Assembly: GCF_026571515.1 (NCBI RefSeq)
Contig: NW_026855281.1
Location: 1-64,000 of the forward strand
Length of the DNA: 64,000 nt
Direction: 5' to 3'
Source: Ruditapes philippinarum
Taxonomy: Eukaryota
Part shown: piece after piece, positions 37,654 through 64,000 of the stretch
How the letters are laid out: each line of letters opens with the position of its first letter
Position numbering within the stretch: the stretch's first letter is position 1
Made by a program: the position numbers and the translations under genes
The notes under the pieces: model-generated
What the model was told of the DNA's origin: nothing
Databases searched by the model: none
The model's input: the letters and a program-made list of their open reading frames with translations, nothing else

Positions 37654-40600
37654 CATTTTGCTTAAGATGAATTTAAGATTTACAATTCCTGCTTATAATA
37701 TATTTTCTTCATTAATTAATAAATTATAGCTATTAACTAGATACAAAACTACTTTGTTTGTCAATTTTTGATTTTTTTTTTAATTCAAGTACATAATTTT
37801 GGGTTTATTCAGAGCTTGAATTTTTAAAAACCGCCCAAGGGGCTTCACATGTAAGCCATTTTTGTGACCCTGGGATTGTGTTGAAAAGAATTATCGGGTA
37901 CAATACGTCCTGTTGCTTCGTGAATTGATACAATTTAATATTAATATCCAAATAATTTAAAGTAAATATTTAGAACGGATACTACACAGGAATAATCCCA
38001 TATCCGGCTCCCCTATACCAAAATGGATATTAATTGATTGCCTAATCTTGTTTACAAGTAGAAATAAAGAGCGTGCAGTAGTACATTTATAATTTGGATT
38101 CTAAATCAATTCAGAATTTAAGTGCCTAAGATCACAACGTTGAGTTTGTAGCTTTAAAACTATTCTTTTTTTTTGGGGGGGGGGGGGGGGATTTTAGATT
38201 AAAAAATGTCCCGATTGTTTGGCCTGGTGCAGAAATCACTTTTTAAATTTTACGTCTAAAACCCGACGATAATAGATATTCATTTTGGGCCCTTTTCCCT
38301 AATCATAAAAATGTCTTTACGAAGTCAATTGGGATTTTTCATGCCACGGTACCCGCTTGGCTGGTTAATAAGACGTTCAAGGTATTTTAATAATAAATAA
38401 GGTTTTAACTACATGTAATATAAAGGGGGTTTTTATCGCTGAGAGCGAATATCTGTCCAACACTTGCATAGTTTGGTAATATTGAATAATTTAATTCTTA
38501 TGCTGCTGTATAAGTGTGGAAAGAGTGGCGCGTGTTATACCCGTAAGTATGTTCTTGATTGTTTTCTTTCAGTTTATAGAAATTATTTGCTTTTTCGAAC
38601 AAACATGCCTTTAAATTTAAAAAAAAGAGGGCAGAGGTTTATCAAAAAAAAATTAATTTTAAACTGTTGTGATGATAGAATATAACCCATAAAATCAATG
38701 CTAATTTTTTAAGAGATTTTATTTAAATAAAATAAAAAAAAAGCACCGCAGAATCATTCCTTCTCGTTGAAAGTGAGAAAACTAAATATGTAGATTCAGA
38801 TGGGAAATTGGGAACTCATAATGTTTTTCCGGGGATAATGAAGTTCAATGTAAATTGCAATAAATGTTTTGGCATAAATTCAAACTTTTCAAACAATATG
38901 CTCTGCAGTAAAAAGGTTATTAAACTACTTTTCTTTTTAACCACTTGCGGCCTCGGACCCGCACGACTCCCCTCATTTAAAAAAATTGTATGTATATTAT
39001 AAAAAAGAATCAACAAACTTTTTTTTTGCAAATTTTTGTTTCATCAAAATTGTAGACAAAACGTTCCCGAATTTAACCTTAAAAGGTAAATTCCATGTTT
39101 TTTGTTCCCAAAAATTTTAGAAAATTTGAATTTAAAAAACGGTAGTGTTTATTTCCAAAGTTCGAAGAAACTTTTGGGAATGTGCAAAAAATGTTAACCC
39201 ACTCTTTTGGGTTTAGGTTAAGTCATAAAAATGTCTAAATGGTGTCTTTAATTTAATTTTTTTTAAAACTAAAATTATCAATTTTCCTTAAAAATTTAAA
39301 GGGGAAATATATTTAATTTTGGGCAATTTTTGGGGGGAAAAACCATGAAACCCCAAAAAAAAAATTGGGGTTAAAATAAAATTTTAAAGTTAAAAAAAAA
39401 GAGGCCAGACCCCAAACCCAAAACTTAAAACCCCAAAAATAAAAAAGAGGAAAAGGGGCCCTTTTGGCCAGGCCTGAAAAAAATTTGGGCAAAAGTCAAA
39501 AAAAGTAGCTCCCTTTTAAACTCAAGGGGCAGCCAAAATCTTGGGAAAATTTAAAGAAATTGCAAAAAACTTAATTAAATGGGGAAATATTTTAAAACTG
39601 AAACAGAAAGTTGGGTTGTTGGGCCCCTTTCGTTTATTATTTTAACCTTTTCCTGGGGGGGGGGGAAAATTTAAAATAGTTTGTAAAACGAAGGGAGCTA
39701 AATAATAATTTTATATTAAAAAAGAGATAAAAAAACATTTGGTCTGGCTGGGGGGTTTGATCCCTTTTGCCCAAGAAGCACCCGAAAGCTAAGGGAAAAG
39801 ATGGGTTTTAGTCTGGTGCGCGAAGTACGGGAAAAAGTGCCCCGTGTAAAGCCCAAAATTTCCCCCCACTTTATCATCTAACCCAAAAAAAACGTAAAAA
39901 AAAAAATTAGAGAAAATAATTTCAAAATTCCCTTAAAAATGGCCAGAAAAAATAATTCCCGTTTTTTCGCCGAAGAAGGGAGCTATTTCTCATATAATTT
40001 TAAAAATTTGAAAATGAAAAAATTTTAAAAAACATCTAGACAAATTTTTTGGACTTAACCCCACTTAGAGTCCCCATAACTGTTTGCTTAAAATATAAAA
40101 ATTTTATATACATTTTTTGAATTTAAAAAAGCAAATTTTTTTTCCTATTTTTTCCTGAAATTTTTTTATGTCTTCTGTAAAAAATGATAAAACAAGAAAT
40201 TTTAACAAGGAAAAGGGGGCCCTTTAATGAACGCAACCTTTTAAAATTTTTAAACCCACAAAAAAGAACCCGTGGCAAGGGAGCCCACGGACCCCAAAAA
40301 AAACAGGACAGGGGGAAAGCAGAGCAAAAATTCAACATTAATTTGGGCACTTTTCATGTTTTTCCGAAATTTTTTTTAGGAAAAAAGTAATAAAGTGAAA
40401 TTTAATTTTTTTCTTTTAAATTTCCCTCCAGAGTTTTAGACCCCAGTTTTGGGAAGGTGGGGGTCCTGGTTTATGAAGGGCAAAAATTTTTCCTTTCCGT
40501 TTTGCAAAAATATATTTGCAAATTTAAAACATGAATAAACAAAATTTTTCCAAAGTCAACTACCTGGGGTTAATTTTTTCGAAAGGGCCCCTTCCCATAA

Positions 40601-42871
40601 AAAGAACAACAGAAACTTTTTTAAAGAATTTTGAAGAAGGAAATTTTTAAAAGGTTCGCCCAAATTTTTCCCACAAAATTTTTATATTTTTTTTGGAAAT
40701 CCCGTTTTAGCTAGTTAAGAAAGCTTTGACTTGGGGTTGTCGGCTTTCTTTTTTTTTGGGCCCGACTTTTGAAAAATAGGAGAGTTTTTTTTCAAACTCC
40801 AAAACGCCCGTATCACATCACCTTTGTTTGGGCTTGGTTCCCCCCTAAACCAAAGTGAAAAATTAAATTAAAACTTTAAAAAACTTATTGGAGAGATTTT
40901 GGGGGTCACATTTAAGGCCCCTAATTTTGTAAGTTTTTTTTGAGAACTAAGTACAACATTTCATCCTTTTTTTTTATTTTAAAGGGGTTAAAAGGCTTTT
41001 TAAAATTCCAAATTAAAACGTAATTTTTGTTTTTAAAGCCAGCACATGTTTTCTTATTTTATTTTATTTTTAAAAAAAAATTAAAATAATGTTTGTTCTG
41101 AAAAAATCGGTTTTTTATCGCTTTTAATTTTTATAATAAAGCAAAAATTTTTCGTTTGTTTAAAAAAATCTTATCTCAAAACCCCAATTTTATTTTATTC
41201 CAATTCTAGAAATTTTTACATAATTTTCCTTTTTTCCATCAAAGCATTTAAAAATATTTTCCCAAAATGAGGTCAGTTTAAACTTAACAAACAATATAAA
41301 AAAAGGGAACATGCGAAATAAACTTTAAAATTATCGCTGTTTTACTCCACTTACAAAATCTTTCAAAATATCCGATATTGACTCTCAGCATTGCTGTTAT
41401 TAAATACGCCGCGCTTTAAATATTATTGAAGCCAGGCTGGTTCTCACCTATGTCGTAAGAATTTGAAAATGGAGAAAACGGCGATAATTTTTAATTTTTT
41501 GTTGCCTGTTGGGTTGTTTATATTGTCGTTGAAGTTTTAAAATTTTATCAAAGTTTTTAAAGTTATATGCTCAGTTACAGAAATACGATAAAGCAGGGAA
41601 GTTGTTTTGTTTGATGATATCATTTTCAAAAGTATAGCAGTAATTATCAAGCAAGCACTGCTTACATTTTATTTATGTTTTCAAAAACTCTGAAATAACC
41701 CATAGAAGTAAAAGCAGGCGAACTTCGGCCGAGTATCTTTCAAAGACACGTTTTGTTTATTTATCTATAAACCATAGCAGGGCTTAGTTTTGTCTCTTTG
41801 TTTGCCCCCCCCCCTTCCCCCGAATTTCCTAGAATCTCCCTTCCCCCTGTGCCCTTTTTGTTAAGTGGGCTTTATTAAACCAAATGATTTTTTTTATTTC
41901 TTTTTTTTTTTTTTTTTGATTTCCTTGTCGGTTATTAAGAATTTTTTTAATGCAGGGATTATAGGGGATAAGCCGTCCGGCTCTCCCCTTTTGCCCTGTC
42001 CCCCTTTTTTTTTTGGGGTTTCCCCTTTGGTCCTTGCCGCTGGGGTTTTTGTTGCCCGGGTGTGTTGGGGGGTTTCCTTTGAACGCCGGCCCCTTTCCCT
42101 TTTTGGGCTTGTTTTATCATATTTTAAATTTTAAAACATCAAGGGGATTTGGGAAAGGGGAGAATTTTCTCAGCCCTTTTGGGCCCCGGGGTAAAATCCC
42201 CATAACAGAAATTTAATTTTTGGGGCTGTGGAAACAAACCGGGTAAAATTTACAATGTAAAACCCTAAAATGGTTTTTTTTTCCATTTTTTTCTTCCAAA
42301 AGTAACGTCAAAAATCTTTCTAGAGGCACCGTTTTTTGTACTTTTAAAATTTAAAGGGATTGCTTTATAAGCATGAACTAACAGTATATCGTTTAACTCC
42401 GCATATTCTTTTTAATCCCTGAGTAGAAGTCAACATTCAATTCCATGAGAACCCTCCTATAGCTTTCCTATAAAGTTTCAATTTCGCTGTAAAATATTTT
42501 CTTAGGGGATTGGTTTTCTTTCTATTTTAAGTAGCTGCTTGTATTTTCTGAACTAAAATATTCTTCTTTTGACTGTAATTAAATAAAGATATAAATGGGT
42601 TGCAAAAAGAAACAACAACAACAAAAAAACAGTATGTAACATAAATACATGTTTATATAAAACCACACTTCAGCAAACATGTATAGTTTAAGCCAAAAGT
42701 TTCTCTTTGAAACAATAAATAGTAAATACAATCCACCATAACATGTATTATTGGAAAGCAAAAAAAAAACTTATTGAAACTCATTTGCAAGAAAATATCC
42801 CTGCAGTATTAAATAGTACTAGTGTCTCAGTTTTCAGTAACTATTTTGTGTCTGGAATCAACTTCTCAGTG

Positions 42872-47719: not shown

Positions 47720-50445
47720 GCCAGGAGACAAGGCGTATGTCTAGTGTAGAAGAGACTACGAGCACACGTCGCAGAAATAAAGAAGTTATCACTAAAGCTT
47801 TGAATGTAGATCCACTTAGAAAATAAAGATCATATAACAACACATTTGATTTTAAAAACCAGATGTGTATTGTGTGCTTCACCTGCAACATTTTTTTCAT
47901 CAAGGAAAAGATCACATGAAGTTTAGATTTTCAAAATAAAATATTGGAAAACTGTCTTGAGCAGGTGTCAAGTGCCGTGTGGCAGCCGTAAAAAGTTGCC
48001 CCGTACTTCACTTCAGTGTTGTTATATTTTCTGGTCCTTCGGGATCATTGATGCCAACACTATAAAGTGTTGAGAATTGAGTACCGCTCAAGCCGGTGCT
48101 AGGGGGCGTGAGGGATGTTGCACTTTTTCATTATCCCTCATGTACAGACTCAATCAAACCGAGTCTGCAATTCTTATGTTATTTTGTTGTGATTAATGCT
48201 TCCGAGGGATCACTTTGTTTCCAGAGTTTTTGTACTTCACAACAGCAGGTGTCAAGTGCCGTGTGGCAGCCGTAAAAAGTTGCCCCGTACTTCACTTCAG
48301 TGTTGTTATATTTTCTGGTCCTTCGGGATCATTGATGCCAACACTATAAAGTGTTGAGAATTGAGTACCGCTCAAGCCGGTGCTAGGGGGCGTGAGGGAT
48401 GTTGCACTTTTTCATTATCCCTCATGTACAGACTCAATCAAACCGAGTCTGCAATTCTTATGTTATTTTGTTGTGATTAATGCTTCCGAGGGATCACTTT
48501 GTTTCCAGAGTTTTGTACTTCACAACAGCAGGTGTCAAGTGCCGTGTGGCAGCCGTAAAAAGTTGCCCCGTACTTTCACTTCAGTGTTGTTATATTTTTC
48601 TGGTCCTTCGGATCATTGATGCCAACACTATAAAGTGTTGAGAATTGAGTACCGCTCAAGCCGGTGCTAGGGGGCGTGAGGGATGTTGCACTTTTTCATT
48701 ATCCCTCATGTACAGACTCAATCAAACCGAGTCTGCAATTCTTATGTTATTTTGTTGTGATTAATGCTTCCGAGGGATCACTTTGTTTCCAGAGTTTTGA
48801 GAGAAATTATGAATGGGCAAATGAAGTGCAATTAAGATTGAGCCACGTAATAGATTTACCAGTAGCTGACGCGATATACCATCAGGCATAAATTGTTAAT
48901 TTCCTGACTGAAAAAAGTATCCCTATGGCATTTAATCTAGTAGGACAGTCTCTGATAGCAACGGAGATTAAATCCCCTGGAAGGCCAGTTATTAATAAGC
49001 AGTAAGACGCTTTTAACAAAGTTATAGATATGATTGAAAGTTGTGAAAATGCAAGCTTAATTGTCACAGACTTAGTGAACAAAATGACAGATATATGTGA
49101 GAGACGTCTTATTCAATCAAACATATGAAGGAGAAAATAATGGATAACTTTGGAGAAGCGGTTATTGTCAGTAACATTGGAGGAAGGAATGATATTGTGA
49201 CACTAAAAATAGTGTTCTTCTGTTGTTCAAAACTTTTATAAATAAATAAGAGAATTATCTGATAATGAAAAGAAACAACAAATCATTAATGCTGCTGCTA
49301 ACATTATTTTAACTGATATCAATAACTTAGTTGATCAAAAGAAAGTTATCCTTTATTCAGTGACATTTCATCACAAGAAAGAAACCTTAAATACTTACCA
49401 TACTGTGTATAATACAATCATGTCGACCAAAATATTTATCTGCTCAATTACAAGTTGGATTTGGTGTTTAATTGCACCACCATTTTGGATCAAGGTTCTT
49501 GGAAGATACATTAAATAGCCTTGGGATTTGTTGCTCCTACTATGAAGTCCAGACGTATGAAGAAAACGCTGCCGCTGTTTTATCAACAAAAATACCATGC
49601 CAAGATACAGGTTCGCCTTTTTGCATTTTATTGCTGACAATGTAGAACACAACTTAAGGAACAACAAGGAACACAACAAGGAAAGGCGGCGTTCATTGAA
49701 CGCCGCCTTTCCTTGTTGATCTTGTTTTTCATATTTAAGAACTCAGGATGGACAAAATACGTTACATGGAATGGGAATCATAGCCACTTCTTATCCAGGC
49801 TCTGCAATGACTGTACGTGTCCCTAGAATATACGTGTCAATGAATGATATATCAACACTTGAAAGAGTTGACACAAAGTATTTCGTGCAATCTGAGTCAC
49901 ATGAAGAGACCTTGCGGTTTTTTGCACTACCTGATATTCAAATGAAAAAAATGGTGAGCCATTGGACATGCTTTGCAAGCTTGTTTGGCCGTTTAGGCAA
50001 ACAAGACAAAAACTAGTCAAGGTTTTTGCAGACATTTGAAAAGCCTAGTGCATTATATCCGAAGAAGTCAACAATAACTTTTATGTCTATGATAGATCTA
50101 CGTCCAAGCGATGCTACATGTATCTATTTAACATTTCATTTCGTCTGTGAACAATCTCAAAAATACAGAAAATACACCAGTGTTAACATTTGAACAGCAA
50201 CTTTATCAAAAAGCACTTGATATCATCTTCTGACAAGGACCGTTAAAGAAAATAGTTTTGCGCTTAGGGGCGTTCCATACAGAAATGAGTTTTCTGGGCT
50301 GTATAGGATATATTATGACCGGATCTGACCTACAGGACGTGCTCGAGACAATATATGCACTAAATGCTGTTACACACATACTGTCTAGTAAAACTGTACA
50401 TCGTGCCATCAGAAGTCACATGCTAGTAGATAATGCATTAAAGAA
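47720..50445 (+). mobile_element. Degenerate Academ-like DNA transposon transposase
   Basis: Across stops and frameshifts: CLERNYEWANEVQLRLSHVIDLPVADAIYH, GRP, ADNVEHNLRTQDGQNTLHGMG, PVLTFEQQLYQKA, LRLGAFHTEMSFLGCIGYIMTGSDLQDVLETIYALNAVTHILSSKTVHRAIRSH. Superfamily assignment is from motif recall. Confidence 0.65.
47960..48798. repeat. Tandem array of ~3 near-identical 283-284 bp units inserted in the transposase relic
   Basis: agcaggtgtcaagtgccgtgtggcagcc at 47960, 48244 and 48527; units differ only by single-base indels. Diverged relatives at 33058-33181, ~35265-35325 (minus), 50830-51430 and 52015-52640. Confidence 0.95.
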
Positions 50446-52014: not shown

Positions 52015-52640
52015 CCAGCTAGGTTTGCAATTTTCAATTAATTTTGTTGTGAATTATGCTTCGATGGATCACTTTGTTTGAAGATTTCTATACTTCTCAA
52101 CAGCAGGTGTCAAGTGCTGAGTGGCAGCGGTAAAACGTTGCCCCGTACTTCACTCCAGTGTTGTTATATCTTTCTGCTCCTTCGGGATCATTGATGCCAG
52201 CACGATTTAGTGTTGAGAATTATGTACCGCTCAATCCGGTGCCAGGGTGCGTGATGGATGGTGCACTTATTTATTATACCTCATGTACAGATTCAATTAT
52301 TTATTATACCTCATGTACAGATTCAATCAAACCGAGTCTGCAATTTTCATGTTATTTTGTGGTGATTAATGCTTCCGAGGGATCACATTGTTTCCCGATT
52401 TTATTACTTCACAACAGCAGGTGTAAAGTGATGTTTGGCAGCTGTAACAAGATACCGCGTACTTCAATTCATTGTTGTTATTTTATGGTCATTCGGGATC
52501 ATTGTTGCCGCTCAAGCCGGTGCTAGGGGTCATGAGGAATGTTGACTTTATTCATGACCAATCATGTACATTCTCAATCAAACAGAGTCTGCAATGTTCA
52601 TGTAATTGTGTTTTGATTAATGCTTCTGAGGGATCACTGC
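52015..52640. repeat. Diverged tandem copies (~2) of the 284-bp repeat family
   Basis: cagcaggtgt(c)aagtg at ~52101 and ~52415; ccggtgc.aggg; caatcaaac.gagtctgcaat; contains a ~29-bp internal duplication at 52268-52326. Confidence 0.85.
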
Positions 52641-53493
52641 AAATATTTGTACATAATATGTAATCATTAAAATATATGCATTCATTTCTTATTGAAAACA
52701 ATGACTTAGAAAAACAAGAATAAAGATCAACAAGGAAAAGGCAACGTTCACAGAACGCAGAAATTAGACCATAGAAAATATTTTTTATTACCTCCATTTA
52801 TTTACATGGAATGTTAAATTCGGTAACATCTTTATAAATAATGTTTTTTGCACTTACAATAAAAAACATCTTAAATTTGAGCAAAATAGTCATGACATAA
52901 AACCATAAAATATTTGTGTTACAGGATCTTAAATGCTTATCAAATTATTACGGAAAACCTGTCAATAAGAAAAAACGATATTAACATTTCATAAATATTT
53001 CACAAATATGGTTTGATTGTCGCATATCTCCTGGTAACGTAATTAAACTGCTCATAAGGGAACATTTCATTTAAGAAGTACTGTCACAAAATACGAGGAA
53101 TTTGCCCTTATTAGGCTGGATGCTGAAATAATTATATGTTTATTTCTTATCATGTGAATGAGTTATTTGTTACCCGAAATTATAAACATAATTTTATATG
53201 ATATAAAAATGTCTAACCTATATCAAGATATATTCTCACTTAAATTTTAACCTTAGTATGTACATGAAACATACAATCTTATGTTATTAGTATGTTTCAC
53301 TTCACTGTGGATTCATGTTTACATAAGCGATAAAGCAATGATATTAGACCACTTAATGCGTCAGCAATCGCTTTTGATAACTTGAGTGTTATCATAGACG
53401 CTGATAGAAGCCAATTTAATTAGTTATATGTAATAGTTTTGTAATTATAACACAATTATTAAGATAGTCAACCTGTCTTGATCTTGAATCATA

Positions 53494-54403
53494 ATGGAGG
53501 CTTCTTTGTCTATTTGTTCTGATGAATTGCGGGAAATCTTTTGTGAACCTTGCGGCAAGGATCGACAAACAAACTTAGCAGAAGGATTTTGTGCTGACTG
53601 CTCTGAATATTTATGTGGTCTGTGTTATAAGTATCACAAGCGCTTTAGGCAATTTGAACACCATGTTCTACAAGATAAAAACAGCATGCCTTTTGATCCA
53701 ATGCATACTGTATCGGACTCGGCAATGTCGAAAGATGTCTGTATTACAAAGTGTCGGACACACACCGATAAAGTTGTGGAATATATCTGCATGTCCTGTG
53801 ATCTAGTTGGATGTCACGACTGCATTACGAACGATCATGAATTATGCGAAAGTGTAAGACATATTCCGATCGAAGTGAAAAAATCTAAGACATCAGTAGA
53901 AATTCAAGGCTTTGCAAGAAAACTGGATGCGATGAATGAAAATGTCAAGGAGTTACAGAACAAGATTTCCAAGAATTTCCATGTTTCCGACGGTATGACC
54001 AAGACAGCCCTTTCAGACCTTGGTCAACAGAAAGAACAGCTTTTAACTTTTTTTGAGCGCCTCTTTGAAAAGATCAAATCGGATCTAAAAGAAAAACAAA
54101 ACACAGATAATCAAGTATTCACAGATTGTCTGAAAGAATTGACAATTCTACACACGGATTTGCAGGAAAAGATAGCCAGGATGAGTAATTTAGAGAAAAT
54201 TAATCAAACTTGTGAAATTTTCATTTTTATGAAAGACACACAAACATTATTAAAAAATATGAAGAGTGACATGGAGAAAATTTCCAGAAATGGACAAGAG
54301 ACGGCTGTCAGATACGATCGATCTATAGAGATTGACGATATTAAAGACGAGATTGCAGATGTTGGATATCTGGTATTCGGTGAATCTGTCAAGAATAAGA
54401 CAA
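53494..54403 (+). CDS. First coding exon: two B-box zinc fingers plus coiled coil
   Basis: ataATGG start; 910 nt; donor A|GTAAGT at 54403/54404. Confidence 0.9.
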
Positions 54404-57400
54404 GTAAGTTAAAATGCATTATAAAAAATAACACATTTAAGTGTGTGGTGATTTCAAAAACGGTTTTTAATTTTCAAACATATTTTTTAAAATTGCCATG
54501 GTAAAATTAGTTTAAAAGATTTTTGATAATATTCATCACAAATTTTACTTATCTTAAAACATTTTGCACCGTGTTTTTTCACTTTGTAATAACTAACAAA
54601 ATTAAGTGGCTGAATTACGTCAAGTGATATGATCTCTTATTTTAGACGAAAAAGCAACACGTGGACATACACAAATGAAGTCACGTCTTACTTTGTCGTG
54701 TCTTAGTGTTTAAGAGGTGACAAAAGGAAAATACAAAATACAAAGCAACTTAAAACACATAACAGTTTTCTTATTTTCGGTTCTATTTTGTCATGTCTTC
54801 GAGTATTGTTTTTGCCTTTTTTAATTTTGTAAACAACTAAGGGATCACAAAAACTTTAAAAGATTAAACAAACAATGAAACTGATATCATTTGTAGAGAT
54901 CGACTCGAAGGAAACAAGGATGGAAAAAGTAATCAACAGTTTAAACCTTGAAAATCAGGATCTCAAGAATGACATTGGTAGGATGCAGGCTCAAGTAAAT
55001 GACCTTTGCAAACAAAATACCCAGTTAAAAACACAGGTATGTGCATTTCATTTATTAGACGCTGATGAACAACATGTCACAGAAGTTTACGGGATTAGAA
55101 TAAACTTTTAACTGAAGTGTTAGTGCCATGTTTTAATATCATATTCTTTTCATCATTATCTAATTTTATCTACATATTAAATAACGTGCCAATGAGCCAG
55201 TCTATAGTCGACCGTTGAGAGAGGTAACGGCTGGACAGTGTCACTCACTTCACTTGCTCCGCCCCTGTTGAAATTCGGGTCCGCCTTAAAGTTTCGCCAA
55301 ATTAAATATGATGATCCGTATGCTAGCATTTAGTCTCCGTTGACGGGGCGGAGGGAAACCAGGACAGCTTTGATCAATATCACTTGTTGAATCATCAAAT
55401 AACAAGTTACAAAGCCTAAACAACGCCAACTATCAGAGAGGCGGTTCTCCTTCATCCATTAAGAAAGTACGCCGGTAACGCTACGGCCAGTAAGGGGAAT
55501 TCACTGCATAACAGTTTGTCCTCCAAATAATTCGGACATTATGCAGTTCGAACCCATATTTAAATGGACATTTTCTTGGCACATATTGTCTTAAATTTAT
55601 TTTAAGTATACCAAGTTGTATTTCAATTTTACTTATTCTCCAATTTATTTTGCTTCGATATTTGTTGCAACAGACAAACATTTCAGAATTTATTTCAGAC
55701 ATGGCATTTTCTTGTGGATTTATGTATTAGGTTCTACTTTTTCACAAAATATGCAACTTTATTATTTAACAACGAGCGAACACCAAGAAAATGGAGAAAA
55801 AATTGATTTATGATTCGGATATTCAACTGAAATAAAGAACGATTTTCAATGCTGATTGACTGTTCACATATTTTGGCGGCGTCTTTGATGTGCAGCATCA
55901 ACATTTAACTTATTTAACATTTAACAGTTATATTTAACCCACCTGCGAACAGACGATGGATAATATGGTGATAGTCTTCGTCCGTCAATCTTTAATTCTG
56001 TCTTTCAGTCCTATATATTTGTCCGGAGTGTTACTCTACGAGGGTTGTCCCAAAATATCGTAGACAAAGCCTGTTACTCAATCAATTATAATACAATTGA
56101 GTCCTCCAGCTAGGGAAAAGTCAATACACCTTTTATGTGTGTCTATGCAAAATAAAATCAAAATACCTTCAAAATTGACCAAGTTATCAAAATTTAAAGA
56201 ATGCTACCTATACATACCCGGCGTACGCCGTCATAAACGTCATGACGGTATAACATTTTTTTTTTAAATTTTCAAAGTATTCACCGTGTTTCGCGATGCA
56301 CTGACAGTGTGGGGTAACCCAATTTTATCATAAACGTTTTCAAAACAGTCCTGCTTCAATGTACTCAACCCTCGCAGAGTTGAGTTTCCTGGCGGAGTTC
56401 GCTGAAGTTTTCGAACATGTGACCTCGTAATTGTGATTTCAAATAAAGAAACACTGCAAAGTCTTAGGGCGTACGGAAGTCTCTGAAAACCTATCACATC
56501 AAGTTCAATCTGTGTCTCCTTAGATCTATCGCAAGGTGCATTATCTTGATAAAATATAATGTTCTCCATGTTGTCAATTAACGCTGGACGCTTCTTCAAC
56601 TTAACATAGTATTCAGTGACATTGCGTTGCGCCGCATTTTCATCTGACGTCGCCATTTTGGGCGTTTTCAAAATAGCACTGCTGTTACGTATTTTGCTAC
56701 AGACTTTTTCAAATTAACGTTACATAAACGTCTGTTGGTGATATGACGTAAAAATGAATGAGGTAATTCCACATGAATGTATTTCCCATAATTATTATTA
56801 TGCTGGAAGTTAAAGGCATTATTTTAAGAAGCATGCTCTCAACACTGACTAATATTTTATCGTGCTCCGGGTATGTTGTACTGTTAAATATAAAACCCTA
56901 ATAAAAAGCGTTACCTAATATATTGGCTATTGACTTTCAGTAGGTAAATTAACAAATGACCAAGGAAGATATCTGGTAAATTTTAATAAGTTATGACGTC
57001 AGGTTGAAGAGAAAATAATGTAGTCTACGACATTTTGGGACAACCCTCGTAAAAGTATTGTGATATCTATTTTACCTGCTCCCTGAATAATGTATATATG
57101 ACTGAAAACACATTTTGTTAATTGATAGGTAAAGAATCGAAATAACATCTTCAATTTTATCTCTCTTACATCAATGTAAGGTTTGTAAGCGTTTGTACTG
57201 TGATATACTTTAATATTATCATATTTCATGGTTTACAAATACTTAGTTTGTGCACAATAAGTTTCAATACTTTGTACATGCATTGATAATCTTTCTATTC
57301 TTTGACAAAAATAAAGAAAAGAATATCCAAATTTGGAACAGGCAAACTTGTATTTCAGGTAGACAAAGAAAAAACGGTATTGAACACCGAGATTCAAAAC

Positions 57401-60400
57401 CTCAAACAGGGCTATGAAGCAAGGTATCGTTAACTTTTAATTTTTCGTAGTTTGAAACAAACAATAATTACGTTTAATGTTTTTTTTATGGAAACAGCTC
57501 TCATTTATAAATAAAATCATTCTGTTTTCCGGATGGGTTCTACTTGAATATAAAGATAAAATGTAATATATTCAAACATTTTATCATATGATGTTTCCTT
57601 GATTTGCGACTTTCCCTTCTGACACATATATAAATCGGCAAACAATAGGATTACGTAATAGAAAGAGCACCGAATCAATAGGCTATCTGATTTGTACGAG
57701 GGAGCGTAGCCCCCGAGTATAAATCATATTGCCGAGTGTTTTGGTGTTTTTTCTCTTTTGTATCATAGTCAAACATAAAAATACGTGCCCTGTTGTCCGG
57801 GAAAAAGTAATCAATGATCGAGCATCTGAATATGATATTTCTGCCGCTTTCCCTTTCTCTGCCGTCACAATATGTAAACCCCAGCAAAAATGAGCCAATC
57901 AACGGGCATGATCTGGAGTGCGGGTAACTAATACCTGCACTCCAGTTACCGCACTGTGCATGTATATGTATACGATTTAACTCTGACACTTTTTCAACAG
58001 AAATGTCCCCAAACTATGATACAAGGAACTTCTTCGGGAACAAAACAAAATTTTAAATATAGGTTTCATTGAGCCTTTAAATTGAAAAATGTAAAACTTA
58101 AAAATCCTACAAAGTTTCAATGACATTGATAAGTGGTACAAGTGAGTAGTGCAGACACAATAAAAAAATAAAGATCATTAAATGTGCATAACTCTTACAA
58201 ACATTTTTTCGACCTTATAATGCCTGCGATATGCACTTATATATTTGGTAGTACTGATCATCTCTTTAAAGTTTTGTTGAGATTGCACCAGTAGTTGTTT
58301 AGGAGTAGTCCGGACACATTTTTGTGATGGTCGGACGGATAGACAGGGAAATGATCTTTATATATTTTAACTACACTGTACAGGGGATTATGAAAAGAGG
58401 GCGTCTTACAGTAATGTTGGTGTTCCGGTTTACACTTAAGCGCTGTCCATATATTTTACGAAAACTGGAGAGATGGAGTACTAGACCATAGTCTCGTTCA
58501 ATCATTTTAGTTCAGGAGTGTCATAGTTTTTATGTCATTAATAATTATTAATAACTTTGATTTGTTCCAGGCTAATACGAATATATTTGATATAATAATA
58601 TATGATATGATTAGAGTTATTTAGACACACCTTATCCATGCATTACATAAAGAAGTGTATCGGATTATTCAGAACTAAACAAATTATTCATTTATAATTT
58701 GCCACACTTTTTTACATTATCTACTAAATCACAAAGTACATGTATTGTGTCATTAATTATAATAATTAATTTTAATTTTTCAGACGACGTGAAAAAGATG
58801 AAGCGTATGTATACATATATTACAAAATACTTCTATGGCACTTTGAAAAACGCAATGCAAGAATATGTTCTACGGATTAGTTCTTTTATTTGTTCTACTA
58901 ATATGTGTAAACTGAATACAATTTATTATATGTAAAATTTAAGTCCGTCTCTGAAAAGCATATTCAATTTATATTATGTATTTTTATATTAAATATATTC
59001 GTATAAGTTTGAAATATATCGAATATAATAAACATTATTGAAGAATAGCATAATTTTATGGCACTTTGAAAAATGCAATGCAAGAATATTTTTTCACGGA
59101 TGATGATATATTGATGGCTTTATTAATTTGATTTATGTGTCAATGTAATAAATTAATGTATTATTAATAAAATTTCAGTTCGTTGTTGAGATGCATTTTA
59201 CATAGTTACATTTAAAAAAAAAATATTCACCTGGTATTGTTAGATCAAATATCGTCCTGCAAGCTGGAATTTCTGAAATTATTTAGACAAAATTATATTT
59301 GCCTCATTATCATATGATATTGTTGCTAAAATGAGTGACAAATCAAGTGCAATTATATACGTTGCACGCTTTCTTGTTTATGTAAACAAATTTTTATTTT
59401 TATTAGAAAAACAAAATATTATGTTTGTATGAGTACATCAAAACATTTTTGTTTAATGGAAACCTTGGCTATAGTTTGGAAAAATAACTTTCATTTTGAC
59501 AGAATTTTGATGAAAAGGAAGACACGTTTTGACAGCATTAAGATCTTTAATTCGAATCATACAACAACTTGGCTAGGGTTTTGATACACATACAAAAAAT
59601 ATGAAACACGAAGTCATTTTTTGGAAAATATGATTTCAACAGATATCTCTATATAGCATAATCAAAAGCATTATCAATTAATCGTTGTTTAAAAGTTTGT
59701 TAGAAAAACCTCTCGTTTTAGTTTTGATATGCAAGAATGCCAAATTTATTTTTTTTAATTTATATGTGTGCAACTAAAATAGATAACTATAAGTAAGATT
59801 ATACATTCGCCTTTTGATATGTAGTTTACAGAGCAATATTTTTATAACATATGCATTTGTTATTGTTATATGAGTTAACATCTAAAGAACAATTGTATAT
59901 ACTTTTATATATCTTTACGAACTCTTATCTCGGGCAGTATCATACATGTTAGAATATATGAAATGATTGAGAAAAAAAAATTATTTATAATTCTCAAACA
60001 TGATTATGATGGAATAAAGCGATTAAGTCCATCTAAATATTTTGTTAAATAGGAAATATATTTGATGTAAAAGTGATGTCATATAAAATGCATATTTTGA
60101 CAGTTTTATGAAAGAAAAAATGAAACGTTTCGATAGCATTAAGATCTTGAATGCAAAAAGTAATACAGTTAGGAAGAACAAAAATCGGCTATAGTTTTTA
60201 GGTACAAAATTGAAACACTTAAGTCCATGTAGCGAAAAAGGAATCACAATTCACACAGATCCCGTACATTGTTGAGTTTCTTATGCCTTTAATAATGTTT
60301 ATTGTCTTCGATATATTTCAAACTTATACGAATATATTTGATATAATAATACATAAATAATTCAACGTGTTAGGACAAGGTTTAGGACACGTTATCTCTC

Positions 60401-61505
60401 GCAATACTAAAAGAAATGTATCGGGTTATTGATGACTTATAAATAACAAATTGATTTATTGTTGGAATGTCCTTCCCTACGTCATTCTTCTGTGAATATT
60501 AACCTTTCCTTAACAACTACGTCATATGTCATTATTTATGATAAATTTAATTGAATGTTTCAGACTACGTCAAATGGAAAGAGAGTAAGTATACATAAAT
60601 TACAAAAACAATTTAAAGACAATTTGAAAAAAATGCAAAAATAGGTTAAACGAATAGGCAAATATAGCACACATACGTTAAAAAATCTTCTGCTTTAAAA
60701 CTAAAATGTCAAGTACTTATTTGATATAAATTATTATCTTGTGGTATTCTAATATGTAATTTAAATTAAGGCTTAGGAATGCCAAAATCCCGGTATTCCT
60801 TAATTTACATTACACATTTTCAGGAAAACACATTGAAAGTTTCTTTAGTTTTTTACATTGACTTTTTTTATTCATTTTCATGCATCTTTCATCAACTGGT
60901 CCCGCCTTAGAGTTACATAGACTTATTAAGGACAGCGCATTTAAATATTGTTTTGAAAGGGATGAGTTAAAGCAAGAATCATTACCAAATTAATATGTAA
61001 TAGAGTTTTATGGATGCTGTCCCTATTGAAACCAACCAAATGAATACCAAACTGAATACTCACTTCTGAATAAAATAAATATGGTATTTCCTATTAGTAT
61101 TTTTGATGAGCTATCTGGCACCGTCATAGTCTCATGGTTATGGTTTAGATGTACGACATCATTTTAACGTTAATGCCTATTTTTAACAAGACTATAGCAA
61201 TAATAAACAATAGAAAAAAAACAGGACTATTAATAATAGATCTCAAATTTACTGATGGAAAGGTTCTGTTTACCAAATAATGCGTAATGCTAATTATTAT
61301 ATATTTTTGTTTCAGACATCAGCTGTATGACATTAAAATGTCGAATATTGTTTGATTGATTAATTGATTGATTGATTATAACATTCTTTGCCGAAGCAAG
61401 TTCTCATGCTTTATTTGTTTAATATATACAACATTTTGATGAATATTTTCAAAATAAAAAGAACCTCATTATAACGATAGTTAAATTTCTTATTTATTAT
61501 TATTA

Positions 61506-61568
<63 letters not shown>

Positions 61569-63890
61569 GTTTAATATAATCTGCTTGTTTCAGATTACGT
61601 ACAAAAGAGACGTAAGTATACTAAATACTGATTTTGAGATAATATGATAAGCGTAGCACAAAAACCAATGCTCAATCAGTTTATTGGATTAATTTATTGA
61701 TTGGTTTATTGTTTAATGTTATGGAGGAATAATAAATATTTTTGCCCAAAAGCTAGAATTTCGTTCTTACATATTGGCAATATGCATTCTATTCTTTTAA
61801 TCGTAATAAATGGCTCAAAAATGCCGAAAATGGTGGCGACGTTTCAGTTAATATTCTTAGCATATTTGCTTGTTTAATTTAAATTATAACCCTTTAAAAA
61901 GGCTGCGTTCTGTACTGATAGAATTTTCTAAAAGTTCAGTACAATATGAAGGTGAAATAATTTATAAAAGTATTGTGATCTGAGATACACTTCGGCTCAT
62001 TGTGTTTATTGACTACTTCTCATCACTAAAAAGACATAATACTTAATTTGTTGTTTTCGTTTTCATAAGATAAAAACTGATTATTAAATTCCTTTTTTTT
62101 CTTCAGCCAACTCAAACATGAACAAGAAGAGTAAGTATATTTGATACGGCTTTAAAATACATTGTCATTTGATAATAGCCACACTCTCGTTGGTTCAAAA
62201 TTAGTCAACAGAACAATTTATAAAATCATATTCACAGGGTGTAGTGTCATAATCAGTAGCTGAACTGGATTTTCCAAAGCTAAAAATTGAATGAGCCTCA
62301 TATTCAATAATCATACAGCTAAGACAATTAACTGTGCGTGCGTAAATCACCGAGTGAATATGAGTTATGAATAGGCGAAGCATCTAAAATGGATTCATAC
62401 TCATACCAAATGACCATACAACATAGCCTTTTTGAAAATGTTGCATTTAGATCTTTATTGCATATTTCTTGAATAGGTAAAAGTAACACCGCAATGACAA
62501 TTACATTGATAACTTGTTTATAATAAAGGGTGAATTTTGGGTTTTATTTTTATCTTAAGCTGATCATATACATGTAATTATCACCTGGCCAATATGACAT
62601 TTACTGTTGAAAATCACATCATATTCAATGGCTCACAAGTAAATAATTGTGTTATAAAATCTGTACACCGCAAAACATGTGAAGTATTGACGGTTGGATA
62701 AACTATTTAAGGTTTGTCCCAGCTAATGCATTACCTTTACTTTGAAGAGTATTCAAATAGGCTAGAACTACTGTCCACTGTATTGAAATTAAGGGGCATG
62801 GGTTCAAGCCCTAGAAGAGGCACTTTTTTTCTTTCTGTTTTTTTTAAACATTATATATGTGTTTCTCGGGTCGTTCTTGGTAAAAAAGGGTATTTCATTT
62901 TAATTAAAAAATAATTTTCAGTATTTGTTTGGCTTAATTATGATTAATTAATTATCAAATATGGTACCTGATATTTTCAAAGTCTTAATTGATTTTGAAT
63001 TTAAATTTGAAAGTTTAAAAATTATTGAACTTTATTTAAAGGAGTGAACTTTAACATTTTTCAAAAATGTCTTAAGAAAAAATTATTTGCATGTATTTGA
63101 TATTTTGATAGAACATGAATTATTTATAAATTTGTTTTGCAATGAGATAAGTCAAAGCAAAAATTCATGAATTTGCATTCACGCGTTCACAACTTTACGT
63201 GTTCTTTCATCACCAGACATGATCATGCACGTTGTTATTGTAGCAAGATAGTTTAGTTTTTGACTCATGAGCATAACAGAGCACATATTGCGCAAGAAAA
63301 ATGATCTCCCCATATTCGTCTTCAGTCGTTCGTCGCCTGTCATTTACCTTTTAACTTTACTTTGATAACATCTTTTTTCTACATAAGGTTAAGTGATTAA
63401 ACTGTACATAGCAAACAACTTGACGGTTTCTGTTTTATACAAAATTACCTACATGAATCCAGTCTTTAGCATATATAAATAAAATCCGGAAAAAATAAAT
63501 TAACTTCTTTTCTCAACATCCTTTAAAGAATTTATTTATGGATTGGCCCTTTTCTTTAAAAGTGAAGATGTACAAAATAGTTTTGGCCTGTTGAGCATGT
63601 GAGAAAGCTATCCAGCTAGCTTAAAGAACGTCGGTGGTTCTACCCGGGTGAACGTTCAAGCCTGAAATAATGCACAAAGTTTCCCTCAACACGTACATAT
63701 GTCCTCTATTGTGTTGATGTGACATTAAACCCAACACTTGAATTTGATATCGCATACACAAATGAAATCCTGTCTATCGACTACATTTAATTATCAAAAA
63801 GAAGTTTCATGTACTACTGTTTGCTTTTTCATATGATGAAAACTAATATTTACATTTAATTTGTTTCAGACTACGTAGAATACAAGAGAT
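53494..63890 (+). CDS. RING-less tandem B-box / coiled-coil (TRIM-like) gene, 3'-incomplete; exons 53494-54403, 54897-55036, 57359-57423, then microexons 58784-58804, 60564-60584, 61316-61324, 61594-61611, 62107-62130, 63870-63890
   Basis: B-box1 CEPC...CADCSEYLCGLCYKYH...HH, B-box2 CRTH...CMSCDLVGCHDCITNDHELC, then coiled coil. All junctions are AG/GT with consistent phases (1, 0, then 2 throughout) and the joined frame has no stop. Confidence 0.82.
56039..57049 (-). mobile_element. Mariner (Tc1/mariner) internally deleted element, 1011 bp
   Basis: TIRs CGAGGGTTGTCCCAAAAT(A/G)TCGTAGAC flanked by TA at 56037-38 and 57050-51. Transposase C-terminal remnants IIFYQDNAP, YLKSQLRG..FEN, GEYFEN on the minus strand. 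Confidence 0.92.
58784..58804 (+). CDS. Microexon 1 (21 nt, phase 2-2; RREKDEA)
   Basis: tttttcag|ACGACGTGAAAAAGATGAAGC|gtatgt. Confidence 0.75.
60564..60584 (+). CDS. Microexon 2 (21 nt; LRQMERE)
   Basis: tgtttcag|ACTACGTCAAATGGAAAGAGA|gtaagt. Confidence 0.8.
61316..61324 (+). CDS. Microexon 3 (9 nt; HQL)
   Basis: tttttgtttcag|ACATCAGCT|gtatga. Confidence 0.55.
61490..61568. repeat. (ATT)n microsatellite just upstream of microexon 4
   Basis: Directly visible. Confidence 0.95.
61594..61611 (+). CDS. Microexon 4 (18 nt; LRTKET)
   Basis: ttgtttcag|ATTACGTACAAAAGAGAC|gtaagt. Confidence 0.78.
62107..62130 (+). CDS. Microexon 5 (24 nt; QLKHEQEE)
   Basis: ttttttttcttcag|CCAACTCAAACATGAACAAGAAGA|gtaagt. 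Confidence 0.78.
63594..63737 (+). mobile_element. Truncated bivalve tRNA-derived SINE (MetaSINE-like core and tail)
   Basis: atgtgagaaagctatccagctagcttaaagaacgtcggtggttctacccgggtg...cctgaaataatgcac...tgtgacattaaacccaac matches my recollection of a common bivalve SINE body; the head is missing. Confidence 0.55.
63870..63890 (+). CDS. Microexon 6 (21 nt; LRRIQE plus split codon)
   Basis: ttgtttcag|ACTACGTAGAATACAAGAGAT|gtaagt. Confidence 0.8.
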
Positions 63891-64000
63891 GTAAGTATAT
63901 TATTTAGTAAACGATTAATAAATATAGTTATAAAATAAGATTAAACAAGATTTAAATCGGTTGTGTGTCCAATGATTAAGAGCAAAGCAACAATTCTTCA

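Follow-up and report, generated by a model that had tools for sequence, protein, structure and literature searches.

Contig C3768 of the 1.41-Gb Ruditapes philippinarum assembly carries a B-box gene with a run of consecutive microexons of 18-24 nt. The stretch analyzed here, called the window, is positions 1-64000 of that contig (64,000 nt). We consider it very probable that the locus is an expressed, RING-less gene encoding two B-boxes and a coiled coil, that 11 duplicated microexons add to it a leucine-heptad helix at about one heptad per exon, and that these microexons are mainly constitutive. RefSeq lists a single product for the gene, XP_060587182.1 (P0001), a protein of 449 aa named 'golgin subfamily A member 6-like protein 7'. 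The architecture is real, unusual and already contained in RefSeq, and as far as our literature search shows it is undescribed: we found no paper linking microexons with bivalves or with heptads, and no case of one heptad per exon.

The gene model can be reconstructed completely from the DNA. A local equality check demonstrated that chaining the exons, minus a 9-nt segment between the second and third microexons, reproduces XP_060587182.1 exactly, provided that the chained frame reads through the last donor, GA/G TAA (slashes mark splice boundaries throughout). In a protein search, residues 1-303 were 100% identical to the translated 910-nt open reading frame (ORF) at 53494-54403, and the frame is intact over 14 exons. 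The array comprises 11 phase 2-2 microexons of 18-24 nt, together 231 nt and 77 aa, spread over 10.7 kb; they make up 231 of the 1347 nt of coding sequence (CDS; 17%). Because each microexon is symmetric, any subset of exons stays in frame. Introns of the RefSeq exon chain measure 380-1759 nt, and the 269-nt interval between the 9-nt segment (m3) and m4 drops out if m3 is no exon. The features are listed below in window positions unless marked otherwise; X1 and X2 are contig-type runs from two different studies.

Exon 1, 53494..54403, + strand: 910 nt, opening with ATG and ending in phase 1; two B-boxes and the canonical coiled coil, no RING; donor acaa/gtaagt.
Exon 2, 54897..55036, + strand: 140 nt, phase 1 to 0, helical; in P0001; loose ends of X1 and X2 before 57356 match its end.
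Exon 3, 57359..57423, + strand: 65 nt, phase 0 to 2; precedes the array as its anchor exon; covered by X1 and X2 contigs.
Microexon m1, 58784..58804, + strand: 21 nt, phase 2-2, RREKDE; in P0001.
Microexon m2, 60564..60584, + strand: 21 nt, phase 2-2, LRQMER; cassette type B, a duplicate of m1; in P0001.
9-nt segment (m3), 61316..61324, + strand: letters ACATCAGCT, between m2 and m4; AG..GT-bounded, phase 2-2; not in P0001.
Microexon m4, 61594..61611, + strand: 18 nt, phase 2-2, LRTKE; first half of an 18+24 pair; in P0001.
Microexon m5, 62107..62130, + strand: 24 nt, phase 2-2, QLKHEQE; second half of the 18+24 pair; in P0001.
Microexon m6, 63870..63890, + strand: 21 nt, phase 2-2, LRRIQE; in P0001.
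Microexons past the window edge, contig 65156-65173 (18 nt) and 65554-65577 (24 nt), + strand: in P0001.
Microexons past the window edge, contig 66857-66877, 67574-67594, 68381-68401 and 69418-69438 (21 nt each), + strand: in P0001; the last is followed by G TAA.

An earlier reading made from the letters of the window (the sequence-only reading) had proposed exon 3 and six microexons. On direct reading, its segment coordinates, the AG..GT bounds, the phase 2-2 assignments and the ending of exon 3 in phase 2 are all exact. Five of the six microexons (21, 21, 18, 24 and 21 nt) are real, being present in RefSeq and supported by GT..AG joints or loose ends in two studies; the 9-nt segment is not among them. 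The description of the exons as symmetric and heptad-sized holds for all 11 (18-24 nt, phase 2-2), and the array does continue past the window edge as predicted, with six more microexons at contig 65156-69438.

We compared the density of such exons with background under a strict signature (pyrimidine tract, YAG, 15-36 nt, GTA[AT]GT). The + strand of 58.0-69.5 kb (11.5 kb) contains 11 candidates with lengths that are multiples of 3. In ~176 kb of background, both strands included, 21 candidates of any length were found, 7 of them multiples of 3, which corresponds to ~0.5 expected in the array. The microexon array is far beyond chance. An Rfam scan of 53000-64000 gave no match.

Transcript evidence was obtained from public runs. 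Words from exon 1 occur in 20 runs from 10 studies, the RNA label of which was guessed; X1, X2 and two raw-read RNA runs (X21 and X23) were aligned to 57340-63339. We treat X1 and X2 as cDNA because spliced joints are present and the introns are mostly empty. Exon 3 is connected to m1 by a GT..AG joint (57423 to 58784) in two X1 contigs, at a depth of 11.1, and in X2, at a depth of 12.6. A second GT..AG joint (58804 to 60564) connects m1 to m2 in X1, and loose ends in X2 correspond to the same connection. Farther along the array, a loose end of X2 after 61611 matches the start of m5, and a loose end of X1 after 62130 matches m6 and then m7, the first microexon past the window edge. Upstream, the continuity of exons 2 and 3 is supported by loose ends in both runs. 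Use of the 9-nt segment appears in none of the rows listed from X1 and X2, a piece of 9 nt being possibly too short for placement.

A different junction was seen in one X1 contig of depth 2.1, in which exon 3 is joined directly to m4 (57423 to 61594); m1 and m2 are skipped, amounting to 42 nt or two heptads, and the frame is kept. A 96%-identical copy of exon 3, flanks included, lies at C14960:59184-59280, and we considered whether the joint came from there. This origin was rejected: within three substitutions, no exon resembling m1, m2, m4 or m5 occurs there, so that the joint stems from the present gene or from an allele of it. The sequence-only reading had suggested combinatorial skipping of the microexons, and this in-frame X1 junction is the one observation that hints at it; RefSeq holds a single product and no further alternative junction was seen. 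The main transcript joins all 11 microexons in order, with skipping at most a minor event, and the contig joining exon 3 to m4 is a hint, no proof, of a diversification system.

Other sequences in and around the locus were recorded as well. The C14960 copy of exon 3 belongs to a copy of exons 1-3 (C14960:56608-59466; 80-87% identical DNA, with in-frame stops in exon 1), and the cassettes expected to follow are missing on that contig until ~90.7-94.3 kb. All four runs, including the raw runs in which the gene stands at zero, cover intronic repeats at 57540-58139 and 62540-63139 deeply on both strands; since their depth is high despite zero gene depth, the reads are probably transposon-derived transcripts from elsewhere. 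The intronic segment 63597-63676 matches ~40 loci at ~90% identity. Upstream of exon 1, a repeated ORF motif (…YPSCTDSIKPSLQF…VVINASEGS…) is present in three tandem copies at window positions 48096-48891 and again 3.5 kb on, at 52158-52663.

The 9-nt segment is probably a decayed cassette, with its acceptor kept and its exon body lost, and not an exon. The 150 nt upstream of it are a 76% copy of the flank of the same gene's LNKVKE cassette (E = 7.5e-24), and this upstream flank is also 75-80% identical to those of the LNKVTE, LTKMKE and LNFVKK cassettes of three paralogs (C9401, C9502 and C1635). In every comparison, the homology ends 2 nt into the supposed exon. The paralogs carry a 21-nt exon of that type 240-330 nt upstream of their 18-nt exon, and the 9-nt segment lies 269 nt upstream of the 18-nt exon here. 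Because the flank homology stops 2 nt in and the position matches that in the paralogs, the segment appears to be the stump of a lost 21-nt exon. Its donor is a weak gtatga, and the leucine register is broken if the 9 nt are included. The proposal of the sequence-only reading that the segment is an exon adding a stutter to the coiled coil is therefore abandoned: it has no RefSeq support, and paralog homology points to a decayed 21-nt cassette. An (ATT)n microsatellite (window 61485-61579) and a (TGAT)n run (61345-61381) lie in the intron just after the segment; as repeats, both were left out of the alignment of runs.

On sequence comparison, the live cassettes of the array are homologous tandem duplicates. 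Those of m1 and m2 share 75% identity in an alignment of 132 nt. More generally, the in-register alignment between cassettes covers about -30 to +15 nt around the exon, and up to 150 nt for some pairs, while mid-intron controls gave one weak match. An intronic repeat family, D1, has one copy near m1 (58527..58603, + strand) and a second at 60278-60354, 79% identical; the copies are spaced by 1751 nt, compared with 1780 nt between exons m1 and m2, and this near-identical spacing indicates that exon and intron were duplicated together. Genome-wide, the consensus pattern of the 'LR' cassette matched 15 sites, against 0 in a reversed control. Thirteen of these sites are on contigs with a B-box exon or a multi-cassette array, and the other two (C861 and C14960) are on contigs with few cassettes.

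Similar arrays are present at no fewer than eight paralogous loci. Altogether, 61 cassettes were collected at 9 loci; they cluster into types whose order is partly conserved. A terminal block D-H-F-G recurs, composed of types D (LQKEQQ), H (THKLENK, 24 nt), F (xDELRK) and G (E-rich). In C3768, C9401 and C4533 the final cassette is of type G, in support of m12, the last microexon of the present gene, as the true end of the array. QLKKEQE cassettes in C15168, C9401 and C1635 are orthologous to m5. Between orthologs, exons are 87% identical compared with 64-72% for intron flanks; as the pairs are not independent, the direction of this difference alone is meaningful. The comparison of microexon numbers among paralogs that the sequence-only reading had recommended proved informative, in that arrays differ by whole cassettes. 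The count reaches 17 at C1635, where a five-exon unit (21, 18, 24, 21 and 24 nt) is repeated and some copies are nucleotide-identical; this array either expanded very recently or was duplicated in assembly. The entire 27-kb contig (C1635:1-27241) is microexon array, and no B-box exon is present on it.

Cassette loss is visible as well. The intron between m10 and m11 contains a dead H (THKLENK) cassette at contig ~67,980-68,005, whose flanks are 77% identical over 166 nt to the live copies in C4533 and C9401; a 14-nt deletion took the exon body together with the donor G. These comparisons indicate that the array arose by repeated tandem duplication of a cassette composed of acceptor, microexon and donor, and that it now evolves by cassette birth and death. 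The exons being symmetric, each cassette gained or lost lengthens or shortens the helix by complete exon units and leaves the frame intact.

The encoded tail has a pronounced heptad character. In its last ten heptads, position a holds Leu or Ile nine times and position d a hydrophobic residue four times; polar residues occupy all b, c, e and f positions, and charged residues make up 59% of the tail. None of 10,000 shuffles reached the observed period-3.5 signal. Each microexon opens with the last base of a g-position codon, followed by the a-position Leu. The sequence-only reading had noted Met or Leu every seven residues, at positions 15, 22, 29 and 36. Those positions depend on the 9 nt, and the heptad register itself holds and is cleaner once the segment is removed: leucines then fall at 12, 19, 26, 33 and onward, ten heptads unbroken. 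It had also assigned stutters to the 18-nt and 24-nt exons. These exons are always adjacent, here and in the paralogs, and sum to 42 nt, or two heptads; this pairing keeps the register continuous, with no stutter in the main transcript.

Structure prediction is consistent with an extended helix. In a single-sequence AF2 model, residues 308-448 (141 residues) form one helix with pLDDT 88-94; a further long helix at 132-269 was predicted with low confidence, and a Pfam scan of exon 1 gave weak matches to coiled-coil families. A homodimer prediction for two copies of P0001 residues 304-449 scored 0.29, compared with a mark of 0.32, a result that we take as evidence neither for nor against pairing. 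The tail helices may pair as a coiled coil. A protein search with P0001 residues 345-449 returned the self-match alone. Among 1.84 billion representatives, a further search recovered 1412 relatives; for none of the 150 listed did the best-matching stretch lie in residues 372-449.

The splice signals of the array are unusually uniform. Ten of the 11 donors are GTAAGT, with the consensus AGA/GTAAGTAT, and the acceptor consensus is TGTTTCAG/ACT. The microexons are 73% purine compared with 49% for the introns. Strong splice sites, purine-rich bodies and short introns are the classical ingredients of strong exon definition. Exons this small would probably be recognized through the combination of near-perfect splice sites, purine-rich bodies that could act as splicing enhancers, and short introns.

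Domain analysis places the gene in a large B-box family. Pfam PF00643 (B-box) matches residues 85-116 with 27.2 bits, above the cut-off of 24.1, in agreement with the B-box call of the sequence-only reading; PF22586 (ANCHR-like, B-box1-like) matches residues 16-58 with 19.3 bits, below its cut-off of 27. No RING was matched by Pfam in exon 1 or in P0001, and the protein starts directly with the B-box1-like motif. As in TRIM proteins, a coiled coil follows the B-boxes, and the N-terminal RING of those proteins is absent. The earlier picture of a TRIM-like protein whose coiled coil is built from microexons accordingly requires modification: the gene is a B-box/coiled-coil gene that, lacking a RING, falls short of the complete tripartite motif, its canonical TRIM-type coiled coil sits in the 910-nt exon 1, and the microexons encode a C-terminal extension. 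Downstream, where a C-terminal domain had been anticipated together with more microexons, the additional microexons were found, and Pfam detected no NHL or other C-terminal domain in P0001.

The genome contains at least 130 B-box loci related to exon 1, in line with the bivalve B-box expansion that the sequence-only reading had mentioned and with an expanded B-box orthogroup described in bivalves (PMC8382680). The eight closest loci (48-59% identity) end their open frame at ~200-360 aa, like the present gene. Many more distant loci are single ORFs of ~600 aa, and the three sampled (L025, L026 and L027) carry NHL repeats. The gene belongs to a small subfamily of at least eight loci within the family of at least 130; pseudogenised family copies with in-frame stops are present on C14960 and C8189. 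The 77-residue microexon-coded extension stands where relatives have an NHL propeller, and we infer from this arrangement that the extension may have replaced the propeller.

RefSeq models of the paralogs are inconsistent. P0003 (XP_060567489.1) reads into the intron after exon 3, P0002 (XP_060604874.1) is partial, and P0006 and P0009 are fragments; P0003, P0006 and P0009 all stop at or before exon 3. The microexon-coded tail of P0002 was not found on the examined part of C8193. The Mercenaria homologue models P0005, P0007 and P0008 stop after the part resembling exon 1. Gene predictors often miss exons so small. The inconsistency of the RefSeq paralog models indicates that such arrays are probably under-annotated in bivalve genomes.

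The end of the gene deserves separate consideration. Following phase 2, an unspliced GTAAGT donor reads Glu and then stop, and the RefSeq model terminates in this way. A separate terminal exon opening with a stop was searched for after m12, and none was found.

Several points weigh against our interpretation of the locus. The last microexon retains a perfect donor, and the gene may therefore truly end further downstream; from ~450 nt past this microexon the contig is homopolymer-inflated and of low quality (~69.9-75.5 kb). The runs X1 and X2 were labelled as RNA by guess alone. The junction from m2 to m4 (60584 to 61594) appears in no row listed and rests on the RefSeq model. X21 and X23 have zero depth on exon 3, which indicates that expression is not universal and permits no quantification. 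With so few hydrophobic residues at position d, the tail might be a single stable helix, not a paired coiled coil. Finally, the array and cassette comparison covers Ruditapes only. As an observation on the assembly itself, same-letter adjacency exceeds 0.5, compared with a median of 0.31, at window 39001-41000 and at C3768 70001-75500, and both stretches look like unpolished long-read sequence.

These findings can be set against other explanations of the array. That the microexons arise by chance or from faulty annotation might be argued from the AT-rich introns, which are rich in AG and GT dinucleotides, and from the RefSeq name 'golgin A6-like', which reflects a low-complexity match only; against it stand the 11 exons observed where ~0.5 are expected, the homologous arrays of the paralogs and the independent spliced contigs, by which this explanation is effectively refuted. 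It is also improbable, though far less so, that the gene is a decaying member of its family and that its tail, an appendage of low complexity, expands neutrally and serves no selected function. The family does include dead cassettes and pseudogenised copies (C14960 and C8189), and the tail has no detectable relatives in protein databases among the matches listed. A neutral appendage is nonetheless difficult to reconcile with a frame intact over 14 exons, with Leu or Ile at position a in nine of ten heptads, with exons more conserved than their intron flanks, and with a gene transcribed and spliced in runs from two studies, words of its first exon occurring in 10 (RNA label guessed).

The joint between exon 3 and m4 is central to the two remaining alternatives. 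Regulated isoform diversification, in which combinatorial skipping would let an immune-related TRIM-like protein exist in a range of helix lengths and registers, seems unlikely to us. It would fit the phase 2-2 symmetry by which any subset of exons stays in frame, the expansion of B-box families in bivalves (PMC8382680), and the X1 joint itself, at a depth of 2.1 compared with 11.1 for the canonical joint and not explained by the C14960 copy. This joint is, however, the sole alternative junction seen, in one run (X1) and not in X2, and RefSeq gives a single product. Uniformly near-consensus splice sites favour constitutive inclusion; moreover, 18-nt and 24-nt exons stay side by side here and in the paralogs and leave the register unbroken, and the 9-nt 'register' exon is a relic. 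Slightly less likely again is that the joint represents a structural allele lacking the m1-m2 cassettes through unequal recombination, in which case the variation would be genomic and not post-transcriptional. In favour of such an allele are the homology of the cassettes and their proneness to recombination, the whole-cassette differences between paralogs, the nucleotide-identical recent duplicates in C1635, and the variant letters in exon 3 and m7 by which the X1 sample departs from the reference; yet splicing would be just as likely to give a skip with boundaries exactly at exon ends. Taken together, the evidence favours a mainly constitutive array of duplicated microexons appended to a RING-less B-box/coiled-coil gene.

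A broader, doubtful extension of this interpretation is that microexon cassettes serve a venerid B-box subfamily as a modular length code, in which copy-number polymorphism, skipping and donor read-through would combine to give graded helix lengths. If true, this would parallel diversification in the style of micro-exon genes (MEGs) or troponin T, built on a coiled coil. Independently of this proposal, 11 consecutive exons of 18-24 nt offer a natural test case for how the spliceosome defines undersized exons, with cis signals that are unusually clear and replicated dozens of times across paralogs. The length evolution of a coiled-coil or fibrous protein is visible here cassette by cassette, in duplicates that are still live and in two cassettes that have died. 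In bivalve annotations, such arrays may lie concealed in some of the proteins named 'golgin-like' or 'trichohyalin-like'.

The gene can be compared with several known systems. With TRIM-NHL proteins (TRIM2/3/71-like) and the expanded bivalve B-box family, it shares B-box1, B-box2 and a coiled coil; unlike TRIM-NHL proteins, it has neither RING nor NHL and carries a predicted helix of 141 residues that is partly microexon-coded. The MEGs of Schistosoma encode small secreted proteins that are almost wholly microexonic, with documented exon skipping. The clam gene resembles them in that symmetric exons of very small size follow one another across much longer introns and can be dropped in frame, and its 11 consecutive symmetric exons are all within the 36 nt that characterize such runs. 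A preprint gives symmetric exons of 3-81 bp for the Schistosoma genes (bioRxiv 10.1101/2023.06.21.545858). Unlike a MEG, the clam gene does not have a mostly microexonic CDS: 17% of it is microexonic, appended to a large B-box exon, and each exon corresponds to one heptad; no homology to MEGs is implied. Exons 4-8 of TNNT3 form a comparable cluster of tiny neighbouring exons that share one phase class, and the segment encoded by them is charged (PMC2447309). These 5' exons of fast skeletal troponin T are spliced in many combinations. In troponin T, combinatorial use is demonstrated and the segment has no heptad repeat, whereas the clam array has twice as many exons and these are demonstrable tandem duplicates. 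The 54-bp exons of fibrillar collagens and the PEVK exons of titin represent repeat-per-exon genes that grew by tandem exon duplication. The clam array resembles them in three respects, namely whole structural repeats per exon, symmetric phases and expansion through duplicated exons; it differs in its unit, a 21-nt coiled-coil heptad, which is well below the usual size for exon definition.

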